Shown in pieces: positions 3,590-61,075 of a stretch of 64,000 nucleotides of DNA. The stretch lies in sequence record PP496440.1; one strand, 5' to 3'. How positions within the stretch are numbered: the first letter of the stretch is position 1; each line of letters opens with the position of its first letter. Position numbers and translations under genes: made by a program. Below the pieces are notes generated by a model. That model made no database searches. It saw only the letters and a program-made list of their open reading frames with translations, and was not told the origin of the DNA.

Positions 3590-4270
3590 ATGACCATTTC
3601 GCTCTCGAAGTTCGTTGTCACCACGCCGATGACCGCCAAGGTAGTTAAGGGTAAGAACATTGCCCTTACGGTCAAGGGTGACGATGCCTGTTCCCGTTGT
3701 GCGGAGTTCATCTCGGCCACCCCCGACGGCGAACTAGACCTGTTCGCCCCGACCCATGGCGCGGCCACCGAGTCGGTACACAGAACCCGTACCGAACTGA
3801 TGGAAGCAGACTACTGGGCTTTGGATTCTGCCGCCCACCACTGGCTGCGTCTGGCGATGACCGTCAAGTGCGTCAACAAAGGCGGCCGTGTCGTGATCGG
3901 CCAGTGCCATGTGGAAGATAGCAACAACCCGCTGATCAAGATCTTTTGGGACAAGGAGTCCATCAAGATCGGTTTCCGTGAAAAAGAAACCGAAGAGCCA
4001 GTGACCACCACGGTGTGCCGTGGCGTAGAACTGGGACAGCGGTTCACTCTGGCACTGCACATCACCAAGGCGGGTAGCGTTTCCCTGACCGTATCCGTGG
4101 ACGGCAAGAAGTACAACTTCACGGAGAAGATGGATCCAACGTGGAAAGACTTCGAGTTCAACTTCCATGCCGGCCTGTACAACCAGCTGGACTACTCGGA
4201 CAAGGTCCCTACCACTGACTGCTCCCGTGCGACCATCCACACGCTGGACGTAGACCACGACGCAGCCTAA
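3590..4270 (+). CDS. Polysaccharide lyase family 7 (alginate lyase 2-like)
   Basis: RTELME (RxELRE), IGQCH (QIH), FHAGLYNQ (YFKAGxYxQ), C-terminal LDVDH; no signal peptide. Confidence 0.8.
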   Translation: MTISLSKFVVTTPMTAKVVKGKNIALTVKGDDACSRCAEFISATPDGELDLFAPTHGAATESVHRTRTELMEADYWALDSAAHHWLRLAMTVKCVNKGGRVVIGQCHVEDSNNPLIKIFWDKESIKIGFREKETEEPVTTTVCRGVELGQRFTLALHITKAGSVSLTVSVDGKKYNFTEKMDPTWKDFEFNFHAGLYNQLDYSDKVPTTDCSRATIHTLDVDHDAA

Positions 4271-4364
4271 GCCCCACCAGCCGCCGCAGGCTGAATGATC
4301 CACTAGTGACTTGGGCCATCGGTCCGGTTATCCGGTAGCGTTCAGCCTGCGAGCGTATACGCGC
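4271..4364 (+). ncRNA. Candidate structured RNA element, copy A (unrecognised family)
   Basis: 13-bp stem 4285-4297/4339-4351 flanked by motifs shared with 37000..37108. Confidence 0.4.
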
Positions 4365-4367
4365 CCA

Positions 4368-4417
4368 CAAAAAAGCCCCACCATCCGGTCAAGTGCCGAG
4401 TGAGTGGGGCTTTTTTG
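4368..4417. terminator. Bidirectional intrinsic terminator between convergent genes
   Basis: Perfect 14-bp inverted repeat CAAAAAAGCCCCAC/GTGGGGCTTTTTTG. Confidence 0.85.
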
Positions 4418-4419
4418 TC

Positions 4420-7266
4420 TTACATGGTTACCAGAGTTACAAACCGGTTGGACATTGCGCGAGCTGTCAGCAGAGTTGCCAGCAGTCCTGTGTCTGCCCG
4501 ATACTTCAATACCACCTTATACACTTTGCCCGGTGTCAGACCAGTTGCCACGTATTCCCAAGAGCAAGTAGCGGCAGTCGCCGAGTAGCAGCTTCTGTCG
4601 TCACTGGCCGCGAGCACAACCGTAGCACCTTCGGTCATTGTAAAACTGACCCGAGTACCTGCTGCACACTGAGCCCCGAAGGTCACCCGGATAATCCCGG
4701 ACAGCCCACACGTTATCTGCGCAGTCGGCCCTACCGTGGTCAGATCCACGAAGCCCACACTGAGAGTAGCCTCTGATGTGTTGAGCACAGCGTTGACCAG
4801 CGAGGTACTGTTCGGCGGAATGGCGTAGGTTCCATCTGCCTTGAGGAACTTGCCGGTGTCAGCAATCTTCGGAGCCGGAACCAGACCATGCTTGCCGTCG
4901 GTAGTTGCAGTAGATCCCACCATGTCGGCCAGCCCGGCCAGTACGTTCGCCATGAAGGTGGAACTGTCCTTGACCGACATCAGGCTACGTCCGTAGTCCG
5001 TGGTCAGGAATGCCTTCACCGAACTCGCCAGTGCATCCCCCATGAGCACAGCGTTCTCAGGAAGGGCCAACGCTGAGATGTTGCTAAGGACGGTAGCCTT
5101 GGCTTGATACCCCGACAAATCTGGGGGCGCTACGACGGGTTGCCCACCTTCCAGCTCCACCGTGGTTACCTTGATGGCGTTGTCCGGCAGTGTAGGTTCC
5201 GTTACCAGCCCATTGGTTTCCGTACCTTTGCGCAGCTTGAACGTACCCGTCGTGTCCGCGTAGATCAAATCAATCCGTTGCTGACTGGTACCTGCTGCGG
5301 CAATCGTGAACGTCACCGAGGTACCGTTGATGGTGTAGGTGTTCCCTTTTATTCGCCATTGAATCTGGGTGCCGCTGCGCAGCGTCAGGGTCACGTTCAA
5401 TCCCGTCTGTGTGACTTCCAGCGGAGTCAGCAATCCATCTGCCAGCCCGGCTTTCAACGCCAATGCCTGCGTGATGGTGTCCAGCGCTTGCTGCACCGTC
5501 TTGGGAATCGGCTTGTCAGCATCTGCCGTGTTGTCCACGTGGTCCAATCCGATGTTCGCACGCACCTGAGCTTTCTGGGCGTCAGCCAAGGTCTGAGCAT
5601 TATACCGAACCAGCTCGGTGATTCCCAGATTGGTACGTACCTGTGCACGCTGCTCCGCAGTGAACACCTGATCGGCATCATACCGGAGGAAGTACCCGGT
5701 CAGCAGATCACGCAGCGACGGGCTGTCACCTAACCCCAGCATCTTCAGTCCGAAATCACTGTAAGGTATGTTGACGTTGCTGCCGTCCAGCTTGAAGCCT
5801 AAGAGCGTGGCGGGCGTGGTTCCCATCTTGGCGAGCGCATCCAGCACGTTACTCTTGGCTTGGAACCCCGACAGGTCCGGGGGCGTAACCATCGGTTGTG
5901 CACCTTCCACAAAAACCGAGGTGATACGAATGGTGCTATCCGGCAAGGCAGGTTCAACGGCAGTGACATTGGATTCCACGCCTTTGAGGACGTGCACAGT
6001 GCCGGTCGTATCCCCGTACAGGAGGTCGTATCGCTGCATGCCAACGCCCGACGCGTCCAAGACAAAGGATACTGAAGGTGTAGGGGACGTGTAGGTAACT
6101 CCGTCGATCCGCCATTGCAGGTTGCTGCCGTTGTCACTCGCCAAGCCAATAAGCAGCCCATTGCTGCTGGTAGATATCGGAGTCAGTAATCCATCCTGAA
6201 GGTCAGCCTTTCCGTCCAGCAAGGAGAGGATGTTGGACAACTGATGCAGGACCGAGGTGGGGATCGGCTTGTCGATGTCCGCTGTGTTATCTACCTTGTC
6301 CAAATGCAAGTCAGCTAGGGTTACAGCACCTGTGAGTCCGTTGATCGATGCGACGACCAGACTATCCTTGAGCCGATCCCATGCTTCCCCGTTGGAGATG
6401 ATCCAATCCCCGATCTGCCAATCCTTGTTTCCGTCGATGTTGGTCGTGCCTGCTACCTTGACGATGTAGTACAGTCCCTTGTTCGCCGTGCTCGCCGCTG
6501 GCATGGCTGGCAAGTTCTTATCCGCATCCCACGTCCCCGCGTACCGCAGGCTACCGAGGATGGATTCCGGAAGATAGGATAGGTCGATCTTACGATTGCT
6601 ATCCAGTGGCACCAGCCCACCTGACTGACCCAGCAGAAGAGCGTCCAACTTGGCGTCCAAAGCCATCTGTTGCGGTAGAGATACAGGCTTCTGAGAATCG
6701 GGGATATTGCTTACGTGTTCCAGGCCCACGGCGGCGGGGGTCAGCACATCTAGCAGACGGTCGCCCCGAATGTACTGCCGGAAGGTACCCAACGGGATCA
6801 GGGAGCTGATATCTGGTGCTGTCACCTTACCCAAGTCCGCGAGGGTTCCGTCGGTGTACATCACCATCAGGTTACCCGCAGCATTGATCATCGATGTGGA
6901 GATACCCCGTCCGGCAGACCCTTTGACCGTGCCCGCATATTCCTGATCCCCGTTGGCATAGGTGATCAACAAGCGACCGTCAGCTGTCACTTGCGTTTTC
7001 TGCACCACCTTACCCGTGGTATCACTACCGGCATCCGAGGTGAGTTGATCCTGTGCTGTCAGGAAGGCCTCGTAGCTGGTCATCAAAGACGGACGTGAGC
7101 AGATCAACAGATTATGGTTGACCAACTTGGCGAGTTCTTTCCAGTTCTTGTCAACAACTGCTAAAGACACGTAGTACCACTCGTCTACGCGCATGCGTTT
7201 TCCATTGACCTGTACGTCTTGCTTCACATTCGGAAATTTCCGGAAGCCTACTAATACGTTATCCAT
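4420..7266 (-). CDS. Large virion fibre/decoration-like structural protein with internal repeats
   Basis: LDxVDNTADxDKP repeats, duplicated ~130 aa module, N-terminus similar to that of 7344..9740; ATG 7266 with AGGTG. Confidence 0.6.
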   Translation of the reverse strand: MDNVLVGFRKFPNVKQDVQVNGKRMRVDEWYYVSLAVVDKNWKELAKLVNHNLLICSRPSLMTSYEAFLTAQDQLTSDAGSDTTGKVVQKTQVTADGRLLITYANGDQEYAGTVKGSAGRGISTSMINAAGNLMVMYTDGTLADLGKVTAPDISSLIPLGTFRQYIRGDRLLDVLTPAAVGLEHVSNIPDSQKPVSLPQQMALDAKLDALLLGQSGGLVPLDSNRKIDLSYLPESILGSLRYAGTWDADKNLPAMPAASTANKGLYYIVKVAGTTNIDGNKDWQIGDWIISNGEAWDRLKDSLVVASINGLTGAVTLADLHLDKVDNTADIDKPIPTSVLHQLSNILSLLDGKADLQDGLLTPISTSSNGLLIGLASDNGSNLQWRIDGVTYTSPTPSVSFVLDASGVGMQRYDLLYGDTTGTVHVLKGVESNVTAVEPALPDSTIRITSVFVEGAQPMVTPPDLSGFQAKSNVLDALAKMGTTPATLLGFKLDGSNVNIPYSDFGLKMLGLGDSPSLRDLLTGYFLRYDADQVFTAEQRAQVRTNLGITELVRYNAQTLADAQKAQVRANIGLDHVDNTADADKPIPKTVQQALDTITQALALKAGLADGLLTPLEVTQTGLNVTLTLRSGTQIQWRIKGNTYTINGTSVTFTIAAAGTSQQRIDLIYADTTGTFKLRKGTETNGLVTEPTLPDNAIKVTTVELEGGQPVVAPPDLSGYQAKATVLSNISALALPENAVLMGDALASSVKAFLTTDYGRSLMSVKDSSTFMANVLAGLADMVGSTATTDGKHGLVPAPKIADTGKFLKADGTYAIPPNSTSLVNAVLNTSEATLSVGFVDLTTVGPTAQITCGLSGIIRVTFGAQCAAGTRVSFTMTEGATVVLAASDDRSCYSATAATCSWEYVATGLTPGKVYKVVLKYRADTGLLATLLTARAMSNRFVTLVTM

Positions 7267-14189: not shown

Positions 14190-15275
14190 TCAGCGACGAC
14201 TTGAACGCGAGGATCTTGTCGAAGTTTTCTCTTTGTCGCGGCTGGTACGGCTGCTGCGTTCCGACCGGCTCGACGTTGATTTACCGGACTTCTCCGGCTT
14301 ATCCGCTTTCGCAGTCTTTTCACGGCGGGAAGTACGCTCTGGCTTCTCTTCACGGCTACTGCGCTTGCTGCCTCGCAGTGGACGATCCGATTCACGTTTA
14401 CGCTTGCTGCCCCGGTCAAGGTCCTTACTGGCTTTCTTGCCTTCTTCCTCGACTTCCTCGGCGTCTGGCGCTTTGGATTCCAAGTTTGCCACTTCCTTTA
14501 CAGCATCAGCATAAGACAGCGGCTGATCGAGGTTGCCTTCGATATCCCACTGCAGATACTTCTGCTCGGTGCGGGTCAACGGAGTAGGGCCAGAGCTGGA
14601 ATCCAGTTGCACGTCGTACATGTCCGACGCCGACTTCGCGTCTTTGTCGTAGGACACCAGCAGGTCACGACCAAACTCAGGGTCGCCCAGCGCCATGATC
14701 TGCACGCCGTTCTTGGTTTTGACCTTGTTGGTGTCTTCCAGCTTCTTGATCTTGCCAGCGATGCGGTCAGTAACCCGCAGTACACGAACCGGGGTCCACG
14801 ATGCGCTGGAGATGCTGTCCATGAAACCGGACTTCTTCTCGTTGGCCGACGGATCAGGAACACGCTTCGGCTCGCTGTCTTGCAGTTCCCGGACGATGAC
14901 GTTCAGATAGTAATACTTCTGCGTCTTCTTCGGGTTTTCGATCTCAGCGAACGGGCACTCGATGGTGGTGTCGAACGTGTCGGCCTCACGGTCGAAGTTC
15001 AGCGGGGTGAACGGCAGATCGATCGGCGTGCCATCGTTCTTGTTGATCGTGATCCGATACACCACCTCGGGGATTGGATCGCCGACGATACGCACCGCGA
15101 TAAAAGAACCGTTCGGTGGGTATTCCAGCATCTTCACTTTCTTGTTGAAGTAAACTTTCTTGCCACCGGTCTGGCCAGCATTGGTCGCACCGAAACCTTT
15201 ACGAGCTGGGGCAGCACCAACGCTACCACCTCCGCCAGTACGGCTACGACCGGTTCTTGCACTGTCACGTGCCAT
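14190..15275 (-). CDS. T4 gp32-like single-stranded DNA-binding protein with basic RS-rich tail
   Basis: VRIVG...CPF...YYYLNVIVR...DPEFGRDL...YDV...PTPLT pattern; upstream of uvsX. Confidence 0.6.
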   Translation of the reverse strand: MARDSARTGRSRTGGGGSVGAAPARKGFGATNAGQTGGKKVYFNKKVKMLEYPPNGSFIAVRIVGDPIPEVVYRITINKNDGTPIDLPFTPLNFDREADTFDTTIECPFAEIENPKKTQKYYYLNVIVRELQDSEPKRVPDPSANEKKSGFMDSISSASWTPVRVLRVTDRIAGKIKKLEDTNKVKTKNGVQIMALGDPEFGRDLLVSYDKDAKSASDMYDVQLDSSSGPTPLTRTEQKYLQWDIEGNLDQPLSYADAVKEVANLESKAPDAEEVEEEGKKASKDLDRGSKRKRESDRPLRGSKRSSREEKPERTSRREKTAKADKPEKSGKSTSSRSERSSRTSRDKEKTSTRSSRSSRR

Positions 15276-16450: not shown

Positions 16451-17410
16451 TCAGTCCAAGTTGAATGCTGACCTAGCATAACCAACTGGGTCTGCGTATA
16501 CGCATAGTTGGTAGATGCGGTCCGTACTGTTCTGCTCCACGATAGCTTCCTCGTAAGACGGAACCGAAACCTCTTCCACCGAAGGATCGTCCATTCCCGT
16601 ATACAGATTGGTTTGGCCCTCCCCTTCTACCGCTTCCACACTCGGGACGTAATACGCCAGCCCCAGGTAGTGGTTGAACTCGTTGCTGGTCTTGGCGTCC
16701 TTGACCCAAAACTCAAGGTAGGATGTGAACGTACCCTTACTGACCTTGTACTTGTTGATCGCCCGCAAGGTGGCCAGCATGTAGTTCTGGGCCATGTCGT
16801 TGATGTCCACCTTGATCTTGGACATCGTGACTTCCTTGCGCACCTTGGAGAACAACCAGCGGCTGTACTTCTTGGCGATCAGCTTGCGCAACTCGTTGGC
16901 CAGACCATACCACATGATCACCTGACGCCGGGCTGACCATAGATCACGGTGACCGGTATAGCGAACGCTGGCTTCGATCTCCGACTTGCTCCGTACCAGC
17001 GTGTGATAGTTCGCCTTGGTAGCGGACGCCAACTCAAGGCACACACCGTCATAGCCTTCCGTTCGTTCAAGGAAAGCCTCGATGATGGCATGGTACATGG
17101 TTCTTTCCAGCTGCATATCGAAGAACAGGGTCAGCTTTTCCTGTGGATCTTTAACCGACAGGAACCCGGCCATCAGGGATACAACATCACCCCGTGAGAA
17201 GGAGGACAGCTTGCGGCGCTTGTTCATCATCTGCCACGACATGGTAGTGGCAACCACCTCGTCGGCGATCAGCGTTGTTTGGAAGATGACCAGTAATGCC
17301 CGGCCAATGAGGTCATCAAGTAGGCCAAACATCTGTGCACTGGTCAGGGTGAGGTCGTATGGATTATTCTGCTTCATCCACGACATCACATCTTGATGGT
17401 GACCGGCCAT
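16451..17410 (-). CDS. Phage RNA polymerase sigma factor (region 2 present, no obvious region 4)
   Basis: DINDMAQNYMLATLRAINKYKVSKGTFTSYLEFWVKDA matches sigma-70 region 2. Confidence 0.75.
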   Translation of the reverse strand: MAGHHQDVMSWMKQNNPYDLTLTSAQMFGLLDDLIGRALLVIFQTTLIADEVVATTMSWQMMNKRRKLSSFSRGDVVSLMAGFLSVKDPQEKLTLFFDMQLERTMYHAIIEAFLERTEGYDGVCLELASATKANYHTLVRSKSEIEASVRYTGHRDLWSARRQVIMWYGLANELRKLIAKKYSRWLFSKVRKEVTMSKIKVDINDMAQNYMLATLRAINKYKVSKGTFTSYLEFWVKDAKTSNEFNHYLGLAYYVPSVEAVEGEGQTNLYTGMDDPSVEEVSVPSYEEAIVEQNSTDRIYQLCVYADPVGYARSAFNLD

Positions 17411-36611: not shown

Positions 36612-36995
36612 TTAGGAGGCTGGGCGTTTAAGATCGCCGCCAACGGAATAGTTACCGTCTAAGCCTTGGATGTAGAAGTTCAGCTGGACGTAATACATCT
36701 GGGCGTCCATGTAAGGGATAACCGAAGACGACTTCATGTCCAACCGGAGGCGGGGTTCATACTTCTGAATGCCCCCGATGAAGTGAGCCATGATCATCGA
36801 GGCCGTATCGGAATTGATGGGCTCGAATAATAGGTCTCGAAGATCGGGATCGATGTCAGGACGAAACAATCGCTGCTTCTGCCCGGTGTTCATCAAATTG
36901 TCCAGCGCCTGATAAACTGCTGACTCATTGAACTGGAGCGGAAGCCCAGACAATGGATCGTTGCTCAAGTCGCTGTAGAGTACCGTGATCGCCAT
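36612..36995 (-). CDS. Baseplate wedge gp25-like protein
   Basis: AVYQALDNLMNT...RLFRPD...LLFEP...IQKYEPR. Confidence 0.85.
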   Translation of the reverse strand: MAITVLYSDLSNDPLSGLPLQFNESAVYQALDNLMNTGQKQRLFRPDIDPDLRDLLFEPINSDTASMIMAHFIGGIQKYEPRLRLDMKSSSVIPYMDAQMYYVQLNFYIQGLDGNYSVGGDLKRPAS

Positions 36996-36999
36996 AGTC

Positions 37000-37108
37000 C
37001 GGCTCCAGCGTGCCGCCCGTATACGCTCACAGGCGGGGTTTTACGTGATGAGTGGTTAAATGGTACGTCCCGATAAATAACGAGCCCGCCTGCCGCCGCT
37101 GGGGGCCG
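37000..37108 (-). ncRNA. Candidate structured RNA element, copy B, occluding the gp25 RBS
   Basis: Shares flanking motifs with 4271..4364; inner stem GCAGGCGGG/CCCGCCTGT; outer stem covers GGAG. Confidence 0.45.
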
Positions 37109-37131
37109 TTACAGTTCAACCTGATTCCACG

Positions 37132-37632
37132 TCAGTTCTTGCCGCGTAGTTCCAGTGTGCTCGCCGACGAAGCCGTCGGAAAGAACTCTACTACAGGGTC
37201 TCCCTTGGAATCAGTGAAAAGCCGCTCCGGTAGATTAACCTCAGGGATTGTCGTTGCAGCGTTGGACGCCGCTGACGGAGATAAGCTACTGGGAGGTGGA
37301 ACGGCTACCATTTTTTCCTTGTCGTCTCCTTCCTTACTTCGGGAGGAGTTGAACCTGCTATACAACTCGCTGATTTGACTCTGTTGATTTCGGAACTGCT
37401 CCGTGGTTTCCCGGTTGAACTTGGTCTGGGTAGACACGAAGGAGATTACCGTCTTCTTCAAAGCATCGATGTCAGCGCTAACAGGAGCCTGCTTGGCATA
37501 GCGATCTTCCACAAAGAAATACATGGAGAACAACGCAATGACAATGGCTATTACTTGGGTAGGCGAGAGACGGATGGCAGAAACTTCTGTGTTAGGAGAA
37601 GGTGTGCCTCCGCTTGCGGGTTGACCAGCCAT
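37132..37632 (-). CDS. Hypothetical membrane protein
   Basis: TM VIAIVIALFSMYFFV followed by coiled coil; GAGG RBS. Confidence 0.7.
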   Translation of the reverse strand: MAGQPASGGTPSPNTEVSAIRLSPTQVIAIVIALFSMYFFVEDRYAKQAPVSADIDALKKTVISFVSTQTKFNRETTEQFRNQQSQISELYSRFNSSRSKEGDDKEKMVAVPPPSSLSPSAASNAATTIPEVNLPERLFTDSKGDPVVEFFPTASSASTLELRGKN

Positions 37633-59095: not shown

Positions 59096-61075
59096 TCAAT
59101 TGATTCCGTACTTTTTGATAAAAGCGGAATAAGGGGTTTTATCGCCTTCGAAGGAATTGACCTTCGAGTTACTTGCCCCGTCTTTGTAGATCAGGGTCGT
59201 GGTAAGGTTCGCGCTGAACGGCCCAATGACGCCGCCGTTCTTCACGATGAACTCGTTTACCTTGCTGTCCCTTACACCGGTCAAGTAGAAGCGCTGACCT
59301 TTGAACAACTGGGACGCCACCCGAACCTTCTTCGGTGGCTTCGGCAACACGTACGTCAATCCAGCCTTGGTATACGCCATGAAGGCCGTCATGAAGGCCG
59401 GAAGGGCTGCAATGAACTGATCCGCACGCTTAGGTCCGAATCCATCCAGTTCTGCCAGCTTTTCCCGCAATGCCTCACGGGAAGCTTTGGTCCGCTGCAA
59501 GCCCGTAGGATCACCCAGGCTCAACGCTGCCGGTTTCAGCAGTGTGAGTCCCATCCCGTGGCCGAACGCCCCGCTGGCGACCATTAGGTCGGCTAGGTCA
59601 ACGTCCACCACACAGTCGGCCAGCGCCGCAACGAACTTCTTAGCCGTCGGGGCACCGAAACCAGCTTGCTCGACCAGCTCTTTGGCGAACCGGATCGGGG
59701 TTTTGGTCACTTTACGAATTAGGCCCTGTACGCCGCCAACGTCCATGTACTCTAGCATAGCGTCAAACGTGGCTTCCTTGAACCCTTCCAGGCCGAGCGT
59801 CACGAAGAAGAACGTCATGGACTTCGTAAGCTGTTGCTCTCCGCTACCAATGGTGCGGATGTTAACCCCGTTCTCATCCCAGTCGTACGACCCCGACTTG
59901 GGCAGATCGGCTTTACGTGCGGGGGTGACCACACCTGTGATGTAGGGGATCACGTCACCAGACCGAACTAGGGTGATTACGGCGCCTTTCCCGATCTTGT
60001 TGTCCTTGATGAACTTGGCGTTATGCCCTGTGGCCCACGTAACTTTGACACCCGCCAGTCGTACGGGAGTTATCTTGACGCGGGGTTTGAGCGTCCCGTA
60101 TCTTGATTCGTTCCACTGGACTTCTTCAACGGTTGCTGTTGCCACCTCGGACATCAGTGCGGACTTGAAGGCGAACTGATAGTCTGGGTTACCTGAACCC
60201 GAGGGGACGCGACCCACCTTGGTCGTGGACACGATGATGCCGTCCATCTCGTATATCGACTTCTTGCGGCGGTCCAACAGGTAATCGGTCAGCTCATTGA
60301 CATCCAGTCGCAGTACCCTCTTGACCGTAGGGATCAGGAAGCCCATTGCCTTGAGTTTGGCGAACTGCTTGTCCACGTCCATGGCAGGCTTGACGATCTG
60401 GTACATGACCACTTTGATCTTCTTGCCCTTGAACACCGGCGGAATGATCTTGCTGTTCGCGGCACCGGCCACCAGATTGCGGGGGTTGGCGAAGTCGTCC
60501 TTGAACTGCTCGAAGGTGGCCACCGGCATGATCAGCTCACCCCGGCCTTGCCAGCCATTGGGGATTGGGGGCAAGTCCAGATAGGGGGCCACGTGGCTGA
60601 TGTCCAAGCCTTGGTTCCCGTCGCCACGGGTGTACAACTCCGGCTTCTTGGGATTGGTTGTTCCCTTGATGCCGATGGAGATGCCGTCCAGCTTGTCCGA
60701 CAGCACGTAGGGGCCTGGGTTAGCTACCGCCCAGCGCAGGATGGACTTCTCGTCCAGATACTTGTTCATGCTGCCCATGCCGAACGGTAGTGACGTCTTG
60801 TTCAGCTCGTTGGACTTCGAACCCACCTGATACATCTTCTTGTCCACGGTGAGGATGACGGTCTCGAACTTGTCGAACTCTGCGTCGCTGACAACAGGCA
60901 CACCGGCGTAGTATGCGTCTTTCAGCAGTAGGTAGGCATCGGCCAGCTGCTTCTTGGGCACGGACTTCGCCGCTTCCACCTGCATGGCTTTGTTAGCCAT
61001 GTGGATGATACCGAACACGAAGTCTTTCAGTTCTTGGCGACCTTTTTTGGTGCCTATGGTGAACTTGGTCGCCAT
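59096..61075 (-). CDS. ligA: NAD-dependent DNA ligase
   Basis: VSDAEFD, DKLDG, YTRGDG, NPRNLVAG, DGII, AFKS, C-terminal BRCT. Confidence 0.92.
   Translation of the reverse strand: MATKFTIGTKKGRQELKDFVFGIIHMANKAMQVEAAKSVPKKQLADAYLLLKDAYYAGVPVVSDAEFDKFETVILTVDKKMYQVGSKSNELNKTSLPFGMGSMNKYLDEKSILRWAVANPGPYVLSDKLDGISIGIKGTTNPKKPELYTRGDGNQGLDISHVAPYLDLPPIPNGWQGRGELIMPVATFEQFKDDFANPRNLVAGAANSKIIPPVFKGKKIKVVMYQIVKPAMDVDKQFAKLKAMGFLIPTVKRVLRLDVNELTDYLLDRRKKSIYEMDGIIVSTTKVGRVPSGSGNPDYQFAFKSALMSEVATATVEEVQWNESRYGTLKPRVKITPVRLAGVKVTWATGHNAKFIKDNKIGKGAVITLVRSGDVIPYITGVVTPARKADLPKSGSYDWDENGVNIRTIGSGEQQLTKSMTFFFVTLGLEGFKEATFDAMLEYMDVGGVQGLIRKVTKTPIRFAKELVEQAGFGAPTAKKFVAALADCVVDVDLADLMVASGAFGHGMGLTLLKPAALSLGDPTGLQRTKASREALREKLAELDGFGPKRADQFIAALPAFMTAFMAYTKAGLTYVLPKPPKKVRVASQLFKGQRFYLTGVRDSKVNEFIVKNGGVIGPFSANLTTTLIYKDGASNSKVNSFEGDKTPYSAFIKKYGIN

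Follow-up and report, generated by a model that had tools for sequence, protein, structure and literature searches.

We found that Pseudomonas phage vB_PpuM-KoPa-5 carries a non-coding repeat of ~100 nt, with five certain copies and a probable sixth in each genome, that combines a hairpin-forming inverted repeat with a 19-nt core, borders transcription units and is oriented with them. Two of the copies, A and B, lie in the 64,000-nt stretch of DNA analyzed here (the window), which is identical by megablast to bases 62001–126000 of the phage genome (PP496440.1; genome coordinate = window coordinate + 62000). Judged by sequence comparison, the repeat is confined to the KoPa-5/Peetri genus of jumbo phages of P. 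putida and absent from Rfam. KoPa-5 is a 201-kb myovirus infecting P. putida that belongs to the CEPEST collection and to genus cluster G3 (PMC7616413), and the paper describing it is silent on non-coding elements. T4-like replication genes, a sigma factor of its own, and 7-deazaguanine genes are found in this genus. KoPa-5 has eight sister phages of 85–100% identity; beyond them, the nearest GenBank relatives are Vibrio phages with ~40% amino-acid identity, which are therefore too distant for comparison at the DNA level. Our tentative reading is that the repeat is a punctuation cassette of transcription units, similar to repetitive extragenic palindromes (REPs) and promoter-early stem-loops (PeSLs), that may act on the sense transcript.

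The family is supported by matches far beyond chance. An earlier note on this DNA had matched two motifs at copy A to the minus strand at 37108–37015, and the quoted strings are indeed present with exactly the identities given: the 3′ motif GCCTGCGAGCGTATACGCGC at 4345–4364 (+) agrees with GCCTGTGAGCGTATACGGGC at 37034–37015 (−) at 18 of 20 positions, and the 5′ motif CCAGCCGCCGCAGGC at 4277–4291 (+) with CCAGCGGCGGCAGGC at 37102–37088 (−) at 13 of 15. Allowing up to three mismatches, the 3′ 20-mer has these two matches in the window and no others, with 0.02 expected by chance. As the 5′ motif of copy B occupies 37102–37088, the matched span starts at 37102 and reaches 37108 only if a CCCCC lead is counted. 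We searched the whole ~200-kb KoPa-5 genome with patterns, an nhmmer profile, and a covariance model and found a canonical third copy, C (genome 133040–133142, −), two partial copies, D (core at genome 54596, +) and G (core at genome 14513, +), and a probable sixth copy, H (genome 171968, +). With both the profile and the covariance model, A, B, and C gave strong matches, and those of G, D, and the Peetri version of C were weak. The pattern CCAGCNGCNGCAGG[CT]-N53-GCCTG[CT]G had three matches in the genome, compared with none in 40 Markov simulations, and a regular expression for the core, drawn up after the copies were seen, matched exactly A, B, C, D, and G in 200 kb, where 0.125 matches were expected.

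The anatomy of the canonical copies is rigid. A, B, and C align over 103 nt with zero gaps and share the layout AA-N7-CCAGCNGCNGCAGGC, a 53-nt insert, and then GCCTGYG-N6-TRYGSG; the inverted repeat GCAGGC/GCCTGC encloses the variable insert, and its 3′ half forms the first 6 nt of the 19-nt core. Copy A, delimited by this alignment, spans 4269–4371 (+), with E values of 1e-22 in nhmmer and 4e-21 in the covariance model. Its 5′ arm is the 15-mer at 4277–4291 (+), which recurs in B and C with two variable positions and the final 6 nt of which are the 5′ half of the inverted repeat. The halves GCAGGC and GCCTGC lie at 4286–4291 and 4345–4350 with 53 nt between them, and the core matched by the regular expression, GCCTGCG-AGCGTA-TACGCG (4345–4363, +), is invariant across eight phages and contains the 10-bp palindrome GCGTATACGC at 4353–4362. 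Copy B, delimited in the same way, spans 37008–37110 (−; covariance-model E value 4e-16); its inverted repeat (37029–37093, −) consists of GCAGGC at 37093–37088 and GCCTGT at 37034–37029, again 53 nt apart, and its core, GCCTGTG-AGCGTA-TACGGG (37016–37034, −), is invariant across four phages. Copy G has lost the 5′ arm but has GCTGGGATA in common with D and GGCATCG in common with C.

The inserts, which the earlier note had considered unrelated, turned out to be comparable in register. They are exactly 53 nt long in A, B, and C and 62 nt long in D and in the Peetri version of C, and without gaps A and C are identical at 26 of 53 positions (P ~0.0005) and A and B at 21 of 53 (shuffle P ~0.01); comparison of the three in reverse orientation gave no match. 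As the length is fixed and the likeness in register is weak but significant, the inserts are diverged homologues. Their identity (40–49% for A/B and A/C) indicates near-saturated divergence, and the geometry has nonetheless remained fixed.

The copies also have features of genomic context in common. The five copies are all intergenic and run in the same direction as the upstream gene (5/5, and 6/6 counting H), three of the cores being on the plus strand and two on the minus strand. Copies D, A, and C occupy convergent gene junctions (genome 54.5, 66.3, and 133.1 kb), of which the genome has ~5 as counted from annotation tables. Four copies have an intrinsic terminator within ~25 nt: A lies just upstream of one, C lies between two, and G and D have theirs on the upstream side; B has none. 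Two copies are certainly within sense transcripts, A in the 3′ untranslated region of the gene KoPa5_00090, between its stop codon and the terminator, and B in the intercistronic gap of 136 nt between KoPa5_00123 and KoPa5_00122.

Comparison of the sister phages gave evidence on both the constraint and the instability of the repeat. All five loci are occupied in 9/9 phages, and there is therefore no sign of recent mobility. Variation among the sisters affects 1 of 72 columns of the core and 52 of the 604 columns in the remaining intergenic DNA (P value 0.016, Fisher test), locus C being the exception to the conservation of the core. Loops are inverted between phages at three palindromes, namely the terminator of A, the hairpin of G, and the insert of C. 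The loop of the A terminator (4382–4403) is in Pori-4 and Peetri the exact reverse complement of that in KoPa-5 and five others; given how close Pori-4 is to KoPa-5 in other respects, the flip seems to have happened more than once. The hairpin loop of G (genome ~14492–14501) is inverted between Peetri and KoPa-5. At locus C, the 62-nt insert of Peetri matches that of KoPa-5 best when the latter is reverse-complemented (z 4.7), suggesting that this probably is a loop-type inversion, too. In Lauda and SKa-4, the segment just past the core of C is replaced by a 64-amino-acid gene with its own terminator (L122:578–772 in Lauda and the matching stretch of L123 in SKa-4), and the breakpoint falls directly after the core.

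These patterns bear on the idea that the repeat is a functionless relic, that is, an old duplicated or once-mobile cassette resembling PeSLs or miniature inverted-repeat transposable elements (MITEs) that decays where it does no harm. The copies are located where neutral DNA survives in a genome estimated to be ~93% coding, G is truncated at its 5′ end, D has a different 5′ flank, no compensatory change maintains the hairpins, and an 11/9-nt direct repeat flanks A in the manner of a target duplication. A decaying cassette would, however, hardly have retained its ends and spacing around near-saturated inserts, nor would its core evolve more slowly than the adjoining intergenic DNA or its orientation follow transcription in every copy. 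With the loci filled in all nine phages and no transposase candidate known, we regard a relic as rather unlikely.

A role at the RNA level, for example in processing or stability, is our leading guess. In sense-strand RNA, whether 3′ untranslated or intercistronic, the inverted repeat would form a hairpin, and the core at the 3′ foot of this hairpin would be recognized by a protein of the phage or the host, either a processing nuclease or a binder that stabilizes or insulates the transcript; the palindromes would double as hot spots for inversion and cassette exchange. This reading supposes transcription and in vivo folding of every copy, a protein that recognizes the core, and an effect exerted on RNA and not on DNA. 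In its favor count the fixed geometry, the orientation and location of the copies, the constraint on the core, the changes in the closing helix, the certain presence of A and B in sense transcripts, and the replacement and inversions seen among the sisters; predicted folding agrees with it in part. The earlier note had each copy close its own stem, and at A we recovered a 13-bp stem with one G–U pair (CGCAGGCUGAAUG/CGUUCAGCCUGCG; in the RNA fold CGCAGGCTGAATG/CGTTCAGCCTGCG, 4285–4351, +). The hairpin of A has a predicted energy of −41.6 kcal/mol, with z −3.9 on the plus strand and z −0.8 on the minus strand, and that of D is similarly stable (z −3.1). The predicted stems are 13+3 bp in A, long in D, 9 bp in B and 6–7 bp in C, and just a 7-bp closing helix is common to the copies.

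Several observations weigh against an RNA-level role. Copies B (z −1.1) and C (z +0.3) are not significantly better folded than shuffled sequences. In RNAalifold on 13 A, B, and C sequences from six phages, the consensus structure has seven pairs, none of them with compensatory change, and the consensus helix shows one-sided G–C to G–U changes only; with 0 of 7 pairs changed on both sides, we rejected a structured RNA family defined by compensatory change. Copy C has one possible local U–A to C–G swap, and some substitutions break stems, such as A>C in copy A of Pori-4 and T>C in D. At locus C, Peetri, Lauda, and SKa-4 depart from the conserved core, and the conservation tests are weak because the nine genomes are 85–100% identical and there is no distant carrier. 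Finally, G, D, and C lie directly 3′ of strong intrinsic terminators in the sense direction, so that little sense RNA may reach them, and G is flanked by its terminator on one side and, on the other, by the promoter-like GGTAAAT box that belongs to the next gene. A position behind a strong terminator, shared by three of the five copies, is odd for a cis-regulatory RNA. Weighing all this, we hold the punctuation cassette to be a possible explanation, and no firmer than that.

The substitutions in the closing helix hint weakly at folding of the sense strand, be it as RNA or single-stranded DNA. By our own count, 6/6 independent changes are C↔U opposite G (P ~0.03 in a sign test calculated by hand, without a tool), and such changes keep wobble pairs on the sense strand alone, giving A–C mismatches on the other strand.

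The earlier note had gone further: as either copy of the 11-mer AAGCCCCACCA can pair with the 3′ arm of the terminator, it took the conserved flanks, the variable stem, and this alternative pairing for the architecture of a cis-regulatory RNA or RNA-processing signal. As a model, this amounts to a switch at A in which the 5′ copy of the 11-mer competes with the 5′ arm of the terminator for its 3′ arm. The 11-mer is present, as described, both at the start of the element (4269–4279, +), where it overlaps the TAA stop of KoPa5_00090, and in the terminator arm (4373–4383), and the hairpin of A is stable; a sub-threshold likeness to attenuator leaders (Thr_leader, 26.9 bits vs. a gathering score of 55) points the same way. 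The duplication alone is not beyond chance, as 37 of 100 shuffles gave at least two matches at up to one mismatch. The fold with hairpin and terminator reaches −74.5 kcal/mol, but forcing the first AAGCCCCACC onto the 3′ arm (4404–4412) gave −62.2 to −53.3 kcal/mol, making the alternative 12–21 kcal/mol worse. Even then a helix is followed by the U-tract, and termination would therefore not be relieved; furthermore, the element follows a stop codon at a convergent junction, and so there is no downstream gene to regulate. No other copy has the arrangement, C, D, and G having their terminator on the other side, and the inverted loop in Pori-4 and Peetri cuts the repeat to the 9-mer AAGCCCCAC. 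Given the cost of the alternative fold, its absence elsewhere, and the shortened repeat where the loop is inverted, the arrangement is a local accident and not the architecture of the family, perhaps a scar of the arrival of the element beside the terminator. By comparison of the copies, the switch model is largely refuted, and we give it hardly any credence, rejecting an attenuator- or riboswitch-type element along with it. What stands of the note's regulatory or processing signal is a real, conserved, hairpin-bearing intergenic element that is oriented with transcription.

Constant orientation, together with the intrinsic terminators that follow A and C in the sense direction, could also suggest that the copies are independent small RNA genes, C being expressed between its terminators and A being derived from a 3′ untranslated region. 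We consider this very doubtful: there is no promoter-like site upstream of A or B, copies B, D, and G have no terminator downstream, and the copies have no common fold.

The effect could instead be on DNA. The core, perhaps together with the strand-specific hairpin, could be a recognition site at which a phage enzyme binds or nicks one DNA strand. Models for this are the localized single-strand interruptions of T5, phiKMV-like, and tf-like phages or the HUH nuclease sites that join a hairpin to a flanking motif; such nicks would be recombinogenic and potential entry points of sliding clamps. Like the nick motifs, the repeat is an asymmetric, conserved and strand-specific sequence with a handful of copies in a Pseudomonas phage; the low copy number of so long and well-conserved a motif fits such a site, and its format recalls the phiKMV nick consensus CGACxxxxxCCTA/CTCCGG, with ...GATCCTACGCGG in C, D, and G and a partial likeness of ...CCTA/CGCGG to CCTA/CTCCGG (PMC3517423). 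A site on DNA would explain the three copies in the dead zones of sense transcription behind terminators and the replacement breakpoint right after the core at locus C, and the tolerance of C-to-T wobble changes equally suits a single-stranded DNA hairpin. The phage also has an HNH endonuclease, a PD-(D/E)XK nuclease, and a clamp loader. The known nick motifs are, however, short (7–19 nt), lie on one strand genome-wide and mostly within coding sequences (PMC3517423; PMC11780129), whereas this motif is attached to a hairpin, occurs on both strands, and is found between genes only. Moreover, A and B are without the CCTA box and no HUH enzyme is annotated, and we judge a DNA-level site to be unlikely, if worth keeping in mind.

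A more specific and quite improbable proposal is that hairpin and core form the substrate of an unrecognized strand-specific phage enzyme marking the ends of late transcription units, either a site-specific DNA nickase or a Cas6/RegB-like endoribonuclease. If it were a nickase acting on the non-transcribed strand, the sites could be built-in loading points of the sliding clamp by which T4-type late transcription is activated and also hot spots for cassette exchange.

Promoters near the copies raise the possibility of a promoter-proximal or operator element, the core being bound by a phage transcription factor or forming part of a phage sigma promoter. The phage has a specific −10-like box, CGGTAAAT (the GGTAAAT box), at 34 sites without a conserved −35 partner, located 25–110 nt upstream of many starts (window 14180, 15314, 15375, 24250, 24279, and 55427, and ~28 more); GTAAAT is 19-fold enriched upstream of genes. 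In the manner of T4 late promoters, the box is probably recognized by the sigma factor that the phage itself encodes (window 16451–17410, −). In favor of a promoter element, TACGCGGTCGGGTA is joined directly to the GGTAAAT box in H, where it is perfect, and in G, where it is degenerate; B ends 20 nt before the ATG of the gp25-like gene (36995), and the orientation of the copies tracks transcription. On the other hand, A, C, and D are directed at terminators or convergent genes and would have nothing to express, no upstream element is common to the 34 GGTAAAT sites, a general promoter class would need more than five sites, and we found no sigma-70-like promoter in or upstream of A and B. Early promoters of the sigma-70-like TGTGCTATAAT type are found at other sites of the genome. 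We therefore think it improbable that the repeat is a promoter element.

Two further sequence patterns were seen upstream of genes. CCTAATT is a second enriched upstream word, and a conserved leader, CCACTGTCCCAAGAGGAATGCACCATG, covers the ribosome-binding site and start codon in several genes (genome 10258, 12528, 47192, 52459, 175639, etc.), often downstream of the TGTGCTATAAT-type promoters.

The preferred reading, a cassette that punctuates transcription units, has known counterparts. The PeSL cassettes of T4-type phages are defined by a sigma-70 promoter (Arbiol et al. 2010, PMC2839356; Comeau et al. 2014, PMC4122927). Like them, our repeat is a composite of ~100 bp that recurs between genes of a large T4-related myovirus, joins a stem-loop to a conserved linear part, sits at terminator/promoter boundaries, and shows recombination or inversion within stem-loops; a PeSL-like replacement junction between sisters is seen at one of the five loci, locus C. 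It differs from PeSLs in that A and B lack a sigma-70 promoter, in having 5–6 copies instead of dozens, and in not being concentrated in hyperplastic regions, three copies facing convergent genes. With REPs and the related BIME and REPIN elements it shares an extragenic, imperfect palindrome oriented with the transcribed strand and placed at operon 3′ ends and in gaps between convergent genes, which makes a role in stabilizing or insulating mRNA 3′ ends plausible. REPs and BIMEs, in contrast, are found in host chromosomes in hundreds of copies, and the repeat has a long, variable insert whose length is fixed and a 19-nt core that is asymmetric, with no GTAG head and no RAYT transposase.

Phage T7 has RNase III processing hairpins between genes, several per genome, in its polycistronic mRNAs. 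They resemble the repeat in their intercistronic or 3′ position, similar size, repetition, and partly conserved sequence. Unlike in T7, long stems are predicted only in A and D, no internal loop is conserved, and three copies lie behind terminators. All in all, the sequence family is new but its general kind is known, and it does not amount to a new class of regulatory RNA. If the core is a protein recognition site, it would offer a handle on how the genus delimits or processes its transcription units and would bear on the swapping of gene cassettes in a barely studied genus of P. putida jumbo phages. The repeat, the GGTAAAT box, and the flipping terminator loops are in any case useful for annotation.

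Outside the genus, the searches returned chance matches. Two pattern scans of IMG/VR gave seven matches, all in unrelated coding DNA; 185,579 species genomes gave 99 single matches in coding sequences of unrelated bacteria, such as an enoyl-CoA hydratase-like gene; and the JGI metagenomes gave one match in coding DNA. Protein-anchored searches of IMG/VR found no relatives of the gp25-like neighbor. Rfam 15 had no matches in the whole window at gathering thresholds, and in E-value mode on A, B, C, D, and G it gave sub-threshold matches only, driven by the terminator hairpins, the best being the Thr_leader match; in line with the earlier note, which could match none of them by eye, no hammerhead, HDV, twister, pistol, or riboswitch model appeared at E ≤ 10.

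Other identities were rejected. ARAGORN found no tRNA or tmRNA genes in the window. A small protein gene is at odds with the stops, the lack of start codons, and the absence of 3-nt periodicity in the variable columns of orthologues, the frame CCA-GCN-GCN-GCA-GGC (PAAAG) running at once into TGA in A (alignment read by eye). A MITE-like element was dismissed on the lack of presence/absence polymorphism in the nine phages, an inverted repeat of 6–7 bp, and a direct repeat only at A, and membership of the REP/BIME/REPIN elements on the chance nature of the bacterial matches and the lack of an annotated RAYT or transposase in the phage. As the five upstream genes are mutually unrelated, the element is not a 3′ tail of paralogous genes. 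Copy D contains GCTGGGATAAACC, which may resemble a type I-E CRISPR repeat and would then suggest a solitary CRISPR repeat (an RNA anti-CRISPR); no CRISPR-DR model matches it.

Two candidates, E (genome 31202) and F (genome 145485), were excluded from the family, both being without the core. They have CGAAGCGCCTGCGA...AGGAGCCCGTGG in common, and E has a perfect 14-bp inverted repeat, GAGCCGTCGCAGGC/GCCTGCGACGGCTC, inside an apparently unannotated open frame. This frame fills an annotated "gap" of 300 nt (genome 31131–31431), has a lipoprotein-like signal (…LLVLALASVLAGCAGN…), and is probably an unannotated gene. F has a core-like sequence antisense within a region of 1 kb without annotated gene (genome 144784–145793) that is of odd composition, with C/T-rich runs such as CCCACCCACCCCCGTGGCCCACCC. 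A core-like GCCTGGGTGATCCTACGGG at window 59502–59520 (−), inside the NAD-dependent DNA ligase gene (nhmmer E value 0.06), is a match by chance or else a seventh copy embedded in the gene.

The two copies in the window have the following neighbors. Upstream of A, KoPa5_00090 (3590–4270, +) is annotated as hypothetical but matches the Pfam family Alginate_lyase2 (PF08787, E value 4e-38) over its full length; it is an alginate lyase family protein and, because of this full-length match, possibly a polysaccharide depolymerase. The convergent gene KoPa5_00091 (4420–7266, −), annotated as a minor tail protein, ends at the terminator that the two genes share. This bidirectional intrinsic terminator (4367–4418) consists of an A-tract, a GCCCCAC/GTGGGGC stem, and a T-tract, and its hairpin has a predicted energy of −32.4 kcal/mol. 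Copy B is preceded by KoPa5_00123 (37132–37632, −), a hypothetical protein of 166 amino acids, and followed by KoPa5_00122 (36612–36995, −), the gp25-like baseplate wedge protein (PF04965). The terminators themselves have sequences in common: GAGGTGAAAAAGCCC is found at four of them (genome 132975–133005, 133150–133186, 145555–145590, and ~147830), and the 18-mer CGCCCACAAAAAAGCCCC is identical at the terminators beside A (window 4364–4381) and C, on opposite sides of the elements.

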